This document shows, in pieces, positions 962 to 8,006 of a stretch of 64,000 bases of DNA (its first letter is position 1; each line of letters begins with the position of its first letter). The notes under the pieces were generated by a model. It saw nothing but the letters and a program-made list of their open reading frames with translations. It did not search any database and had not been told where the DNA came from. A program made the translations under genes and the position numbers. The stretch is from positions 372,001 to 436,000 of the forward strand of contig JALMLS010000268.1 of assembly GCA_038496445.1 (NCBI GenBank). Direction: 5' to 3'. Origin of the DNA: Trichosphaerium sp. ATCC 40318. Lineage: Eukaryota > Protista > Tubulinea.

Positions 962-2132
962 ATGACGGCTGTTGTAGCACCTAGATCACCCTTACCTGTT
1001 ATAGTATTTCGTGGTACGTAAGGTGGCCTGGATACATAATTTGTAATAATTTATTAATTTATTCTTTGCTAATCCTTTCGAGTCCAGACAAAACTAACAA
1101 CAATCAACACATCACGTGCTATGATATTCAAGGAGAAATAGGCTGTGGCAGTAGCGGCAGTGTATTTGCAGCAAGAGAGAAGACTACACGAAAGCGTGTT
1201 GCGTTAAAGCGTATTAAACGCGAGTTCTTTGAGAAGTTCCACTCGCTTGTAAAGCAAGAATTTGATTTTGGTAGAACCTTTAAACACTCAAATATTATCA
1301 AGGTGCACGGCGTTTGTGTAGATGAAGGTACGTTATCCCAATCCATAACTTGAAAACAACATTGAAAATATTGTAAAAAACACGTGCTTACTTGCAACTT
1401 GAAAAAGGCCTTCCCGTACTGATCATGGAACGTGCTCGTTGCAGCTTATTTGATTTGCTTGATGGTAAACCCCTGTCACTCCTTAGACCAATTTTACAAG
1501 TGGCGACTTATCACGTGCTCAGAGCGTTACAGCAAATACATTCACGTGATATAGTGCACTGTGATATCAAAGTCGGTATGAGACATTCATATTAGTACAC
1601 TCTGATACTTAATTGTTGCGCAGAGAACATCTTGGTTGGATACGATGGTTTCTTTAAGGTAGCTGATTTTGGGTTTGCACAGACTGTTGGCCAGTTTAAC
1701 AAGATTCCACTCGCTGGAACGCCACAAGTACGTGATAATTCAGTATCTTTCAAGTTAATCATGGTATAGTACATGGCACCGGAGTGTTTTGTTGGCAAGG
1801 GAGAGTTTACGACAAAATTTGATATTTGGTCAGTTGGCGTATTAGTTTTTGCCTGTTTGGTTGGCGAGTTTCCAAAACAAGTAGACTTTTCATCAACAGA
1901 AAAAATATGCAGAACACTTGCAACTGTAGCAAAGCAAGGATACATCAATTATTCGTCACAAATCGGCGAACTTTCGATTGATGACGTAGCCTTCTTGGGC
2001 GCCATTATGGTCGTCAACCCATCACAGCGGCCTACCGCTGCAGACTGCTTTAAATTACCCTGGCTACCTGCTCGTTTGGGTCATCCTCTACCAAAGAAAA
2101 CGCAGAAGAAAAAGAGAAGAGAGAAGCAGTGA
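962..2132 (+). CDS. Ser/Thr protein kinase, multi-exon
   Basis: Spliced motifs IGCGSSGSV, VALK, HCDIKVENIL, DFG, GTPQYMAPE and DIWSVG, joined by GT-AG introns. Confidence 0.92.
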
Positions 2133-2549
2133 ACAATATTTTTTTAACCCTCATTTTTCGCTGGTGTCTCGTTGTATATGTACCTTGTATCTTGTAAATA
2201 ACACCTAAAAACTCTGTCACGTGGGTTGCCATATTTTTGTTTTTTCTGAGATATACGATGTGTCAATTAAATAACTATTAATAGAAGGCTAAACAGGCAC
2301 TGTAGAATTACGTAATGGGTTCTATCTCCTAGCCGTAGATTGCTTCTCAAATGGTGTAGTGCAATGTGTACCGTTATGAAACGCGGACTTTGACATTACT
2401 GTAGTATCCCGTTTGTAGTTTTTTCACATCAGTGGCATCAGCAATTCTACTAGAAACAAGGAAAACTAACGTTAAATTACATCACATCGGTCAATCAACT
2501 GAAAAAATCAGTTTAGTTTAATTCAAACCGCGCATACAACGTACGAAGC

Positions 2550-5171
2550 ATGGCACAAGCGTACCCAACGAATCCTGCCTATCAGGGCGGTTCACAAGCT
2601 TATCAGGCGCCACAAAAACAGCAAATGCCTACATACTATGGTCAACCAGCGCAAAGGGCACCACAACCTGGTTGGGTGCCACAAGCGCCGCAATTTGTAG
2701 CGCAAGGTCCACCGGCACCTCAGGGCGCACTACCGACGCCGTATGCACAGTACTATCCGTACAACGCTTTCGGCGGTTACATGTACGGCCAAAATTTCAA
2801 CCAAAGGCAACGCGTTCCCCCTTACCGTGGCCGCGGGCGAGGATCGAGAGGTCGTGGTGGTTTTGCTGGTAATCGGAGACGTGGAGCTGGTCGACAATCT
2901 ACAGCGCCTCAGCCTATTCAAAAGGGCGACGTTGCCAAGTACGATATTAAATAATCGCCAGAGGGCCTATGGGAGCGATCTGGGAGCTTTTTTTCACCCT
3001 CTCTCGCAAATCGCTCCAAATGAGCCCCTAATGCCTACTTAGAGGTCCTACCACCAATTTTAAAAACCTGTTGCAAGAAGCACTTCAAAAGCGTGGCTTA
3101 GCGTTACCTACTTACAACACCATAAAAGTCGGTTAGTGACACATGTTTTACATTTAAAAAACCAAAAAACATGTCTCCGCCTCCCATTCTCGCGCTTTGG
3201 TAGTGTCCCACGCCACTACTACAGCGTTTAAAGAAGAATTGAAGAATTTCTTTTTTGCACAAATCCCCCTTTGGTACACTAAAATAGCACCAAAATCGCT
3301 CAGCTAAAAGTCAAGAGGCTGGCTACATTCAGGCGCATTATTCTTTTTTTTGTTGCACTAATGACTCTCTGTAAATACAAAGGAACTCTGACATGCCCTT
3401 GTAGGTCACCATACACGTGCTCACTTTGTGTCATCTATAAAGTTGTGGGATGATACTGTAATCACTTCTCCAAAGGATAAGGTCTATACTCAACGCAAGG
3501 TGCGCATTATTACAACATGTTGTTAAACAGGATTTGTCATTGTGCACTTTGGAGAAAATCCAATTTTTTTTTTACATTATCGTTGTTAACTTCGTTTTCT
3601 AGCATGCAGAGCAATATGCCGCTGATCAAGCAATAAACTACGTCAAAACGAGCGGACCTCCACCGCGCAAAAAGGCTCGAAGAAAGCAGGAGCAGTCAAA
3701 TGCTAGAGTGCGCTCCCTTCAAAATTCACCAGCTCCTGTAGCACAACCTCCTGGTGCGTTATCACTCAATTGGTTGTATCTAACGTGGAATTTGATCTAG
3801 TCAATATGCCAGCAGTACCAATCAATCACGCACGATTGCAGATGATTTTAATGACAGACATTGCCATTTCCCCTCTAGACACAACTGCCATTAATAAAAT
3901 ACAGGTACCTACAATCCAACATGAATGCCAGGCTGACTAACATTGTAATGCGATTTAGACAGAATTGGTACCTCCTGTTGAAGAATCCAAAGAACTTGCT
4001 GTGTTTGTGGATCAAGTCCTCTCTGCCATTCGAGAACTCAAGGATGAAGAACATATCAAAGACATACAACTCGTCGGTGCACACGCATGGGTACTTACCA
4101 GCCACTCACTTATTTGCACCGGTTTTTTTATTAAGTTAGTATTTAGGGTACACGACTTAAAGGTGATTGTACTGCCGAGGTCGTTGTTGTAGATGTCGCT
4201 CCGCCTTGCGTTTCTCGTGTGAAGACTTATGTCACTTCACTCAAAGAAAAATTCCTTGATGGCATGACGAACAACGTGCGAACGACCTTTTTTGTTGTTC
4301 AGCTTATTTTGAAACTAAATGTTATTAGGGCTCTATAATCACCTTTAAAAAGACTGTAAAAGACTTGTCATATACCGTCATTGTTGATTGGACATTTCAA
4401 GAAGTATTTGGATTTAAACCAGGTACGCACGCGGTAGTTGTTATGCTACACCAATTGGTGGCTTCTCAACCGTCTTGTTTTGGTGCGTGGCGATTACTCA
4501 CATTGTTGTCTTGTATTAGAAGGCGATGCCGCAGATACCACTTCAGAGTCGTATGTTGACGTTGTAGCAATGAAGGAGGCTATTATAAAGATTAGACAGA
4601 CATTGTGGTGGAAAGAAACAATGGGCTTCAATGACAGTTACACCTACTCAAGGAATATAATTCGTGTTTTCACACATCTATGTGCAACTGCTGAGGACTG
4701 GCGCATCCTTGACACTTGGGTACGGTTCTCTTTATGCCAAAGGTTGAGCCCAATCCTTGCTAACCTATTGTACATCAGAAAACTGTGGTTATCGTGTACA
4801 GAGCGCTTCATCATTTTCAGTTTTCTTCGGCTCATGGTAGAGCTGGGTTTGTAGCGCTGCTGAGAGGTGTATTTGAGTATTTTGCAGCCGGTACAACGAG
4901 CTTTAGAATTCTTTTTTGAACCGTGACTTTTCTAACTCAATCGAATAGGACACATTCTCCCTGGAGGCATGACCTTACCTGACCCAGTTCGCGAAAATAA
5001 ACAATTGCTTGAAGGATTGTCTCTCGACAAATTGAGCCAAGTAACAAAGGTAGCACAAGCTCATATTATTGGGCTCGCTACAAAAGTAAGCTTTTTTGGT
5101 TCACCTGTTTACTCATCGTTGCTAACGTAAATCTCTTTTAGCCCGAGCCGACACTCAAAGGATTGTTCTAA
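2550..5171 (+). CDS. Q/P/Y/G low-complexity + RGG + dsRBD + DZF-domain protein (ILF3/NF90/ZFR-like fold)
   Basis: dsRBD: FKNLLQEALQKRGLALPTYNT..HFVSSIKL..QRKHAEQYAADQAI. DZF/NTase-like: QLVGAHAWGTRLKGDCTAEVVVV, AIIKIRQTLWWKE, IIRVFTHLC...W..LDTW, LLRGVFEYFAAGHILPGGMTLPDPVRE, VTKVAQAHIIGLA. Confidence 0.8.
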
Positions 5172-5346
5172 TTGTAGTATAACATCTTGTACATAAACCT
5201 GTGGTGATGAGAATAAAGAAAGCAAGCCTTTGAACCCAACAACATCTTTTTCAATTAATTTTTATTATTACTGTGATAGTACAGAACCATGTGTGGTAAT
5301 CACTTTCATTTTCATTTTACAAGTTTTGTAATATGCGTGACATTAA

Positions 5347-8006
5347 TCACGTGACTCTCAAAACAGAGTTTTGAATAATAGGAGACGTGTTATAAGATAC
5401 AAACACGCTATAGGTACCAGGCGTTGGTGCAACGTACTCCGCGCTATGCGTACAGTTATAAATGGGTTGCATTGTACTAATAAAACGCGACGTACCGATA
5501 AATACCAGGGCTTTGAACAGCAATGTTTGCGTATAAGTTAGTAGGGCCTTCAATGCGTACTTTGATTCCATTCGGATTACTGATAGCCTACAGGAAAAAG
5601 TGAGCAATCACGTGACCAGCTAGTGCTGAGCGTGCCTTTGGAGAACCTGTGCCGTCCGTCACTGTAACAGTAAATGAAGATGGTATGCCAGCACGTGTCG
5701 TTGAAAGACCGAGACCTAAAGCAGAACATGTCAATAACAAGACATGATTACTAAAGCGCTTACCGCCCACTTGAAAGTTTGTAGCACCACCAGAACCGTA
5801 ACCAGAACTAGGCGAACCAAAGCTACCTCTTGGATTATATCCACCAGAGTTTGCATTAAACCCACGGTTTCCACCCCATCCTTGTTGTGGTTGTTGTGAA
5901 AATCCTGCAGCCGACTTGTAAGTAAAATAACCTACATGCGCAGCACATGGCTAGCAAGAAGAGGCTAATTCCATTCAAATAACTCCGCACCTCCATTTTG
6001 AAATACTGTCAAATTCTGAGAGAACATTGGTCTGTTTTGTATACTCACGTTTATAGCGTAAGGACCAGGTGCATTTGGCATAAAGTCAATGCCTGTGTCT
6101 CCATTGCCTAGATCATACACTTGTGGTGCCAGATTCACTGAAAACAAAGATTAGCCAAAATAAATGGAACCTACCTAAACAACGCGATAAACACCGTACT
6201 TGGACCACTGCATGTTGCTGAAACCTTTTCTAGTTCCAATTGTAGAGGCTCACTAAGTATACAAGTAAGCGTTTGTCACATGATAACCACGTGCCCTGTT
6301 GCATCTGATGTGGATAGGACATAGTGCGCCTTTCGGCCCATAGGCATGCTCTGAGGGCCAGAGAAATTGAATCGTTGTGACATGGCCTTTAGGAAAATAA
6401 GAGATTAAACTGAAAGTTTTTTGATTGGCTCACCGAGGAAGCAGGTCTTAGCTTGCGCATTGGTGCTGCATTGTTATTCCCAAACATGTTTGTGACTTGT
6501 GGTTGTATTGGTTGCGGCTGTACCTGTACCGGAACTGGCGTAGGTTGTGGAGAGTAAGTCACAGGCGCAGTTTTTGGTTGTGAGAAGACACCAGACGCTC
6601 TAGCCTAAAAAAACTAAATTATTGAGCCCAAACAAAAATCTGCATACCTGAGGAGTAGGTCTCACTGGTTCTGCCTTTGCTTGCTCGAGGCTACTCAACA
6701 AGTCTGATAGCTCGTTACTGGCTTTAGAGTCGATACCAGTCGGATGTGTGGTTGGAACACTTGCAGCTTCCCGGCGTGGTGGATCTTCAGGTATTGGATT
6801 CTGTCTGCGTCGCATCGATGATCTGGATGAAGCGTTGCTCCTCACGCTTGATCTGTCAGGGAGAGTTGATTGGAGATTAGCACTAGAGGCTTTTGTGTGA
6901 AACAAAGCGTTATCGTCCATTTGTGTAGGGTCGTATTCCTGAGGCGGATCGTGCAAGTCTGCTATCAGGTTATCCAACTCACTTAATCCAGAATCTTCTG
7001 GTTCTGCCGTTGGCATGCTTGGATCCAATCCACCACCTGCAAGTAGCCGCTTTAGCGGTTGTGACACTTAATTTAAAAAGAGAGATAATTGTACCATCTT
7101 CTAAATCAGCAATAAGCATGTCGAGCTCGTTGTCTACTGCTGTGCTCTTTACGGAGGCTCGCACACTTCTTGCAGCCATCCCAACGAGTCGATTCATTGC
7201 CATAGGATCTAGGTCACCATTAACACTGCCTCTGGTGCTCCCTGTGACACTAGGGGCGCCATAACTGGAGCGTGTATTGTATGATGCACCAACACTGCCC
7301 CTGCCAGCAGTGCTTGCAGGTTTGTAACTTCCTCTTGTACTACCTCGTCCGTTGTATCCTGTACTTGCTCTTGTATCGTATCCAGCTGTCCCAGACGCGT
7401 TTGCCCCATAACTGGATGTACTATCTCTGGTGGGTGTCTGTAAGAGAGTTAAATGGTAAAAACAGTAAATATAAAAACAAAAAAGCAAATTAGGACAAAC
7501 AAATTTAATCGTACGTAAGTTGAAGAGGTTTTTGGTTCTGGGTCGTACGAGTTGTCAGCAAAATCGTTATAGTCCAGGTCAAATTCAGACAGCCTACTTC
7601 TTGAGCTTCTAATCGTTGATCGTACATCCTCTTCCAACTCATTGACAAGAGCGTCTACGTCTGCTGTGTTGAGAGCGTCTACGAGAGTTCAGTAAATTGC
7701 TTTTCCCTGGAAGTTGTCTCAAATAGATGTAGAGGCGTTATAGTTTGTGTAAATGGCGCATAATGCAATCACGGAAAGCTTTGGCCCAAAAGGAAGTAAC
7801 ATTTTAGTAAACAAACAAGTAAACGCACCATCAATATCTGTTGTGCCCGTCATCCCTGAATCGACGCCCAACTCAGACATTAGTGCATCTAATTGAGACA
7901 TACTAGTATCGTTTGAAGGTACAGATGGCGTAGAGACGCTGGCACTAACTGTAACGCCAGCTTGTGCATTGTCAAAGTCTGCAAGTAAATTATCTAGCTC
8001 GTCCAT
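5347..8006 (-). CDS. LD-motif-rich disordered protein with two C-terminal filamin (Ig-like) repeats
   Basis: LD-like motifs MDELDNLLADF, QLDALMSEL, DVDALVNELE, ELDMLIADLE, ELDNLIADLH, ELSDLLSSLE. Filamin repeats DLGNGDTGIDFMPNAPGPYAINVSI and CSALGLGLSTTRAGIPSSFTVTVTDGTG..GIYRAEYVAPTPGTYSVFVSYN. Confidence 0.8.

Follow-up and report, generated by a model that had tools for sequence, protein, structure and literature searches.

Is the pairing of a double-stranded RNA-binding domain (dsRBD) with a DZF domain, as seen in NF90 (ILF3), peculiar to animals? The question is raised by a gene on the forward strand of a 64,000-nucleotide stretch of Trichosphaerium sp. ATCC 40318 (assembly GCA_038496445.1, contig JALMLS010000268.1, positions 372,001 to 436,000; hereafter the window), in which a low-complexity tail, an arginine-glycine-glycine (RGG) box and one dsRBD precede a DZF domain. 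NF45 (ILF2) has been reported "throughout the metazoa" and NF90 from vertebrates only (PMC3467086), and no paper linking DZF with Amoebozoa or other protists was found in the literature library searched. On the profile and sequence matches described below, a module held to be animal-only is also present in a distant protist, the marine amoeba Trichosphaerium. The interpretation favoured here, which together with the mechanism proposed below is considered fairly probable, is that the protein is of the DZF (NF45/NF90/ZFR) type, binds double-stranded RNA (dsRNA), is a pseudo-nucleotidyltransferase and is native to its host.

A preliminary description of the window, drawn from the letters alone, had proposed a region rich in Q, P, Y and G, an RGG box, one dsRBD and a DZF-like domain in a protist, in an order reversed relative to NF90 and with a degenerate nucleotidyltransferase (NTase) signature. 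All four parts were found to be present, by composition and by Pfam matches to dsrm and DZF_C; the order is indeed the reverse of the NF90 layout (PMC11952958), and the signature proved degenerate upon alignment to NF90. The motifs quoted there, GAHAWGT, DCTAE and LPGG..L.DP, were located at residues 315 (VGAHAWGT), 326 (GDCTAE) and 502-511 (LPGGM..LPDP).

A single spliced gene

The interval 2550-5171 of the window holds no single long open reading frame (ORF), the one starting at 2550 being only 134 residues long, and the coding exons were traced in three forward frames. They make up one gene of 12 exons and 1662 nucleotides (553 codons and TAA), of which the start codon lies at 2550 and the stop codon ends at 5171, exactly the limits given in the preliminary description. 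All 11 introns are of the GT..AG type, 47-273 nucleotides long, with CTAAC-type branch sites in most. Logan contigs of sequencing runs from three studies, aligned to 2400-5400, had all 11 introns spliced out at the coordinates of the model (the exon 8 donor in the transcripts being 4422/4423), and one of them, a 1847-nucleotide contig of run X1, extends from 2442 to about 5248 through all 12 exons. Because this one spliced contig spans every exon, the dsRBD and the DZF domain are carried by one mRNA and not, as the preliminary description had allowed for, by separate genes.

An exhaustive protein search returned P0001 (523 residues), identical to the exon 9 peptide over the full exon. P0001 and its cluster mate P0004 (544 residues) stem from the transcriptome MMETSP0405 of Trichosphaerium sp. 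ATCC 40318, labelled Amoebozoa, Discosea, in agreement with the protist host proposed. The in-frame peptides of the exons were exact substrings of P0004 at consecutive positions, and the exon 12 peptide was found in P0001. These transcript-derived proteins were used as queries, P0004 comprising exons 1-11 and P0001 lacking exon 2 while including exon 12; residue numbers throughout are those of P0004.

A slightly different allele, from a fourth run under a different organism label, showed four listed differences (3641, TAC/TAT; 4683, TGT/TGC; 4856, GCG/GCA; 4983, GAC/GAT), and as all four are synonymous changes at third codon positions, they point to purifying selection on the gene. In runs X2 and X3 (organism B, 2024) the same gene was seen at about 97-99% identity, with some pieces unspliced; the sample of organism B may represent a related Trichosphaerium strain or species.

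Assignment of the DZF domain

The DZF region spans about residues 243-553. Within it, the Pfam profile DZF_C (PF20965) matched residues 441-538 over profile positions 5-99 of 133, with 33.2-34.5 bits against a cut-off of 24.3 and an E-value of about 6e-8 to 6.7e-8. When all PDB sequences were searched with phmmer at E up to 10, the sole matches were three DZF chains of ILF3 (NF90), namely 9gtz_B (2.1e-5), 4at7_B (1.5e-3) and 5dv7_C (6.8e-3), along approximately 230 colinear residues covering both lobes; chains of OAS, cGAS, PAP and NF45 gave no match in that search. The Pfam families OAS1_C, NTP_transf_2, SMODS and Mab-21 likewise had no match in the protein at E up to 10, and none of the CBASS CD-NTase models in PADLOC matched, so the comparison of DZF with OAS1_C profiles suggested by the preliminary description was answered by a DZF_C match above its cut-off and no OAS1_C match at E up to 10. 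A model of the archaeal CCA-adding enzyme gave a weak match (E 0.007) to the helix and the following G-x to acidic region. Searches of Pfam and PDB with single exons returned noise only, the exons (29-66 residues) being too short.

Language-model look-alikes from the Atlas, taken as leads only, placed an OAS1_C/NTP_transf_2 cluster first for the DZF domain alone, with DZF/ILF2 clusters equal to it (both 0.92); with the dsRBD included, ILF3 (0.92) was followed by STRBP (0.89). The order of secondary-structure elements in a single-sequence AlphaFold2 (AF2) model of the domain fits that of an NTase, running helix, G-x strand, acidic-pair strand, helix, two strands and a helical lobe, in a model of which the predicted local distance difference test (pLDDT) is 39.

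The catalytic site

Five positions carry the catalytic or nucleotide-binding roles: a Ser that follows a conserved Gly, a Lys and three acidic residues. In NF45, which binds ATP and UTP, Ser107, Asp121 and Lys228 are retained; NF90 has Leu97, Thr168 and Arg234 (PMC3467086). These roles were transferred to the amoeba protein by means of the phmmer alignment to NF90 (chain offset +2, checked on Arg308, Gln309, Glu312, Gln319 and Arg323). The Ser after Gly is replaced by Ala (VGAHAWG), the first Asp by Thr (GDCTAE), the third Asp by Thr (SYTVIV) and the Lys by Thr (RVFTHL), and only the second acidic residue, the Glu of GDCTAE, is kept. The signature of OAS and CD-NTases, G-S ... D-x-D ... D, reads here as G-A ... 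T-A-E ... T (or D). With four of the five positions replaced in that alignment, catalysis is unlikely, and the protein is most likely a pseudo-enzyme.

The predicted RNA-binding half

Residues 1-89 are dominated by Q (20%), P (17%), A (15%), Y (12%) and G (10%), and residues 90-116 hold six RG/RGG repeats, RGRGRGSRGRGG among them. The dsRBD (residues 137-204) scored 23.7 bits within the whole protein and 28.6 bits as an isolated domain against Pfam dsrm (PF00035), for which the cut-off is 23, and also matched the NCBIfam model of the RNase III C-terminal region (E 3e-6). Its AF2 model, of moderate confidence (pLDDT 65.5), displays the alpha-beta-beta-beta-alpha order (helix 9-22, strands 32-39, 42-49 and 53-56, helix 66-84), and the best Foldseek matches of this model were the dsRBDs of plant DRB2 and HYL1 (probability 1.0, E 1.5e-3). 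A phmmer search of PDB sequences placed the domain closest to the solved dsRBDs of DRB2, HYL1, DRB3/4 and bacterial RNase III rather than to those of NF90. The RNA-contacting KKxAE..AA motif with which helix 2 begins is represented here by RKHAEQYAA. Between the dsRBD and the DZF domain, a linker rich in P, S and A contains a classical basic patch, RKKARRK, at residues 213-219.

The resemblance of the DZF domain to NF90 is taken here as a sign of common descent because of its specific match to DZF_C and ILF3. For the overall architecture, an independent assembly is preferred, given a dsRBD of the DRB/RNase III kind and a domain order opposite to that of NF90.

At least five further dsrm loci were observed in the genome (C102:82277-82477, C218:31907-32107, C128:26754-26966, C187:55288-55395 and C47:211745-211924), and other dsRNA-binding proteins are therefore encoded in it.

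Predicted dimerisation and the search for a partner

A two-copy model of residues 225-544 reached a score of 0.39 (median of three runs) as opposed to 0.01 for the best of three controls, a score which is to be read as likeness to the solved NF45-NF90 complex and not as proof of binding. In calibration, 21 of 30 proteins with a solved one-chain pair attained this mark, compared with none of 23 solved as single chains; among eukaryotic proteins, the corresponding figures were 17/29 and 0/30. In this two-copy job, ESMFold2 folded the domain with a partner pLDDT of 77, and the contacts agreed between runs to at least 74%. The predicted interface is formed by residues 487-505 (the end of helix 8 and the HILPGGM loop) and 524-543 (aligned to helix 9 of NF90), which are the elements that form the NF45-NF90 interface. 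Residues 497, 498 and 535 contact themselves across the predicted axis; Q535, which would face Q535 of the other copy, aligns to Gln319 of NF90 in the core of the NF45-NF90 interface (PMC3467086). Of the structure predictions that the preliminary description had called for, the dimer model held up against its controls, and the monomer model was of low confidence, with the pLDDT of 39 given above. The modelling suggests that the DZF protein probably dimerises with itself.

In the mechanism proposed, the dsRBD and the RGG box would hold structured or double-stranded RNA, and the RKKARRK patch would act as a nuclear import signal. Rather than catalysing, the DZF domain would pair two copies through the helix 8 loop and helix 9, such that a symmetric dimer presents two dsRBDs to the RNA. 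Such a dimer could serve as a scaffold binding RNA duplexes in RNA processing or in the handling of foreign dsRNA, as NF45-NF90 does in animals.

The most probable alternative is that the protein forms one half of a heterodimer, its stability depending on a divergent or exon-fragmented NF45-like DZF protein of Trichosphaerium that escaped detection, in the way that NF90 and ZFR need NF45. The characterised DZF proteins all work as heterodimers with NF45, which does not itself form homodimers in cells (PMC3467086); moreover, the genome scans with DZF_N and DZF_C were insensitive enough to miss the window's own gene. Set against this, the DZF region, searched as protein against the entire assembly, recovered only the gene's own eight exon pieces, and the homodimer model passes its controls. 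The search for an NF45-like partner, as advised in the preliminary description, ended without one in these insensitive scans. Its sole DZF_N candidate, L001 (contig C153), had an E-value of 0.03 in the genome scan and scored 20.8 bits when its frame was taken in isolation; it was rejected as an antisense-frame artefact because the opposite strand encodes NPR3/NPRL3, to which three Pfam matches run colinearly (NPR3 profile positions 163-227, 310-403 and 423-450). Dependence on such a partner is regarded as unlikely. The NPR3/NPRL3 gene itself, which encodes a GATOR1 subunit, lies on the plus strand at about 667-1844 of L001 (G000:C153:29732-32947), its Pfam matches falling on three exon pieces.

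The homodimeric reading can be carried one step further. Wolkowicz and Cook proposed a homodimeric precursor for the heterodimers of NF45 with NF90, ZFR and SPNR. Were the amoeba protein the sole DZF protein of its amoebozoan host and a symmetric homodimer, it would be a living example of this precursor, a proposition that is regarded as unlikely. The homodimer-ancestor idea does become testable with one recombinant domain, and the gene would offer a simple one-gene system for asking whether a dead NTase domain acts in dimerisation, in ligand sensing or in shaping RNA geometry.

Points against the interpretation

Several observations weigh against a self-pairing DZF pseudo-enzyme native to the amoeba. 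The N-terminal profile DZF_N (PF07528) scored only 12.2-14.3 bits, below its cut-off of 27.1, in a colinear match of residues 272-359 to profile positions 41-134. The AF2 model of the DZF domain is of too low confidence to verify an NTase fold, and its Foldseek matches (I-DmoI, gyrase and kinases) are noise. The catalytic positions were read from a low-identity alignment to NF90 that is weak around the strand, and the third catalytic Asp could instead be the Asp of IVDW, which lies four residues past the aligned Thr; even then the Ser, the Lys and the first metal ligand would be gone. Only one of the three core residues of NF90 helix 9, the Gln, is kept. The dimer score may reflect the model's memory of structures of the 4AT7 type, that is, of NF45-NF90, and among eukaryotic test cases with no older solved relative the mark was reached in only one of seven. 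The six-frame searches of the genome were fragmented by exons and insensitive, as seen from the gene that the DZF_N and DZF_C scans missed. Lastly, no orthologue was found in the protein, viral-contig or metagenome-contig searches.

A second alternative takes the degenerate site to be functional after all, with the protein working as an OAS-like sensor whose dsRBD recruits dsRNA and whose NTase domain synthesises a 2'-5' or cyclic oligonucleotide as its signal. It draws on the OAS1_C/NTP_transf_2 cluster that came first among the Atlas look-alikes of the domain alone, level with the DZF clusters, on the occurrence of OAS-like proteins in 8 of 12 eukaryote supergroups (PMC10732462), and on the one Glu, and possibly one Asp, that remain of the triad. 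This sensor is nevertheless judged quite improbable: G-S reads G-A, Thr stands in place of both the first metal-binding Asp and the phosphate-binding Lys, and the profile and PDB searches reported above favoured DZF_C and ILF3 over every OAS-, SMODS-, Mab-21- or CD-NTase-type model. Genome scans with DZF_C, OAS1_C and SMODS were blank, and insensitive on intron-rich DNA; because the gene described here itself escaped the DZF scans, such blanks are not evidence of absence. Three NTP_transf_2 loci were recorded in the genome (C26:77071-77295, C53:34901-34999 and C11:262448-262570).

Origin and relatives

Word-based searches of 5.8 billion proteins returned the protein itself only, and an exhaustive protein search with exon 9 alone (66 residues) returned this protein and two chance matches to repeat proteins. 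The viral contigs (2.9 million) and the metagenome contigs held no relative.

That the gene is foreign, through transfer from an animal or giant virus or through contamination of the assembly, is very improbable, even though the Trichosphaerium genome is reported to be unusually rich in genes derived from giant viruses, about 40% of which have introns (PMC10521059), and protein searches found no other protist relative: the gene has 11 host-type introns, their lengths in keeping with the genome mean of 75 nucleotides (PMC10521059), it lies inside contig C27 (at about 374.5-377.2 kb) with other spliced genes as neighbours, it was found spliced in the same way in runs of three studies, its similarity to ILF3, at only about 20-27 bits, is much lower than a recent transfer from an animal would leave, and no viral relative was found in the contigs searched. 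These introns, this setting, the very low similarity to ILF3 and the lack of a viral match make it unlikely that the gene was recently acquired from animals or viruses.

For a DZF protein native to Trichosphaerium, the consequence would be that either the origin of the module is pushed outside the animals or the same list of parts was put together twice. If the homodimeric reading is true, dsRNA-binding DZF pseudo-transferases would be at least as old as the last ancestor shared by Amoebozoa and animals, and not an animal invention.

Comparison with characterised proteins

NF90 is arranged as a DZF domain, a linker with a conserved nuclear localisation signal (NLS), a first dsRBD, a 50-residue linker, a second dsRBD and a low-complexity region with RGG and RGRGRGRG, and NF110 has a longer low-complexity tail (PMC11952958). 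The amoeba protein shares with ILF3 (NF90/NF110) the DZF pseudo-NTase domain, ILF3 being its only solved relative by sequence (E 2e-5) and its best Atlas look-alike (0.92). The two proteins further share a dsRBD, a Q/Y/G-type low-complexity tail and an RG/RGG box in which an RGRGRG run occurs, and in both a basic NLS-type linker separates the dsRBD from the DZF domain, the Ser after Gly is missing and Thr stands at the third Asp position. The differences are equally plain. The amoeba protein runs tail, RGG box, dsRBD, linker and DZF domain, as opposed to DZF domain, linker, two dsRBDs, RGG box and tail in NF90, so that the layout of the ILF3/NF90-STRBP subfamily (N-terminal DZF domain, two dsRBDs and C-terminal RGG or low-complexity region) is not the one found here. 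It has one dsRBD, nearest to those of plant DRB/HYL1 and RNase III, where NF90 has two; its first catalytic Asp has been lost as well; its genome yielded no NF45 partner in an insensitive search; and its host is an amoebozoan, whereas NF90 has been described as vertebrate-only (PMC3467086).

With NF45, which represents a small family of DZF proteins, the protein has the DZF domain in common, and ILF2 clusters were among the nearest Atlas look-alikes (0.92, domain alone). Ser107, Asp121 and Lys228 of NF45 are, however, Ala, Glu and Thr in the amoeba protein, and NF45 has no dsRBD and wraps the heterodimer with its N- and C-terminal extensions. The polarity of the amoeba protein is instead that of ZFR/Zn72D, where the RNA-binding module also lies N-terminal to a C-terminal DZF domain, and the ZFR-NF45 complex is regarded as the older one (bioRxiv 10.1101/2022.06.15.495552). 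ZFR binds RNA by C2H2 zinc fingers and is about twice as long, whereas the amoeba protein has a dsRBD and no Pfam zinc-finger match.

OAS belongs to the same broad NTase superfamily and is activated by dsRNA; the order of secondary-structure elements in the pLDDT-39 model matches it, and OAS clusters were among the nearest look-alikes. Unlike the amoeba protein, OAS keeps G-S and the three Asp residues and has no dsRBD, and it is DZF_C and not OAS1_C that the amoeba protein matches.

Further features of the locus

The features of the gene are listed in Table 1.

Table 1. Coordinates of the dsRBD-DZF gene and its parts in the window
Feature	Position	Strand	Description
mRNA	2442..5248	+	one spliced 1847-nt contig (run X1), 5' and 3' untranslated regions included; last 107 letters from 5142
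Exon 1	2550..2938	+	ATG; Q/P/A/Y/G-rich region, residues 1-89 (nt 2550-2816); RG/RGG box, residues 90-116 (nt 2817-2897)
Exon 2	3043..3131	+	89 nt; dsRBD helix 1 and strand 1; in P0004, not in P0001
Exon 3	3405..3499	+	dsRBD strands 1-3
Exon 4	3603..3753	+	dsRBD helix 2 (RKHAEQYAA, to nt 3641); basic RKKARRK (nt 3666-3686); P/S/A-rich linker
dsRBD	3062..3641	+	residues 137-204, across exons 2-4
Exon 5	3801..3904	+	DZF region begins
Exon 6	3959..4090	+	helix preceding the NTase core; VGAHAW (G-A instead of G-S)
Exon 7	4147..4275	+	GTRLKGDCTAEVVVV; T and E at the first two metal-binding positions (nt 4162-4179)
Exon 8	4329..4422	+	strand YTVIVDW, contains the third catalytic Asp position
Exon 9	4520..4719	+	first helices of the C-terminal DZF lobe
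Exon 10	4779..4890	+	helix 8 equivalent
Exon 11	4949..5085	+	HILPGGMTLPDP loop; helix 9 equivalent, residues 524-543 (nt 5023-5082); predicted dimer interface, Q535 on the axis
Exon 12	5142..5171	+	last 9 codons and TAA
Pfam DZF_C match	4657..5067	+	residues 441-538, exons 9-11; 33.2 bits, E 6.7e-8, cut-off 24.3

Intron 1 (2939-3042) can fold into an imperfect hairpin of about 22 base pairs with a minimum free energy of -30.4 kcal/mol (z -2.4; 2 of 200 shuffles were as good). The hairpin stands directly before the 89-nucleotide exon 2, the skipping of which shifts the frame. P0001 lacks this exon and reads "SPS" at the join of exons 1 and 3, as would be expected if exon 2 was skipped in the transcript and ORF calling then dropped one base to restore the frame; the aligned Logan contigs held the exon-2-included form only. 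The position of a hairpin beside a skippable exon of its own, in a gene for a predicted dsRNA-binding protein, suggests autoregulation, by which the protein might control its own splicing.

Directly upstream, the ORF at 1773-2132 (+) is the end of a protein-kinase-like gene, with a motif of the "...FDIWSVGV..." type and a basic tail. As its ORF ends at 2132 and the DZF transcript contig begins at 2442, the two genes are separate.

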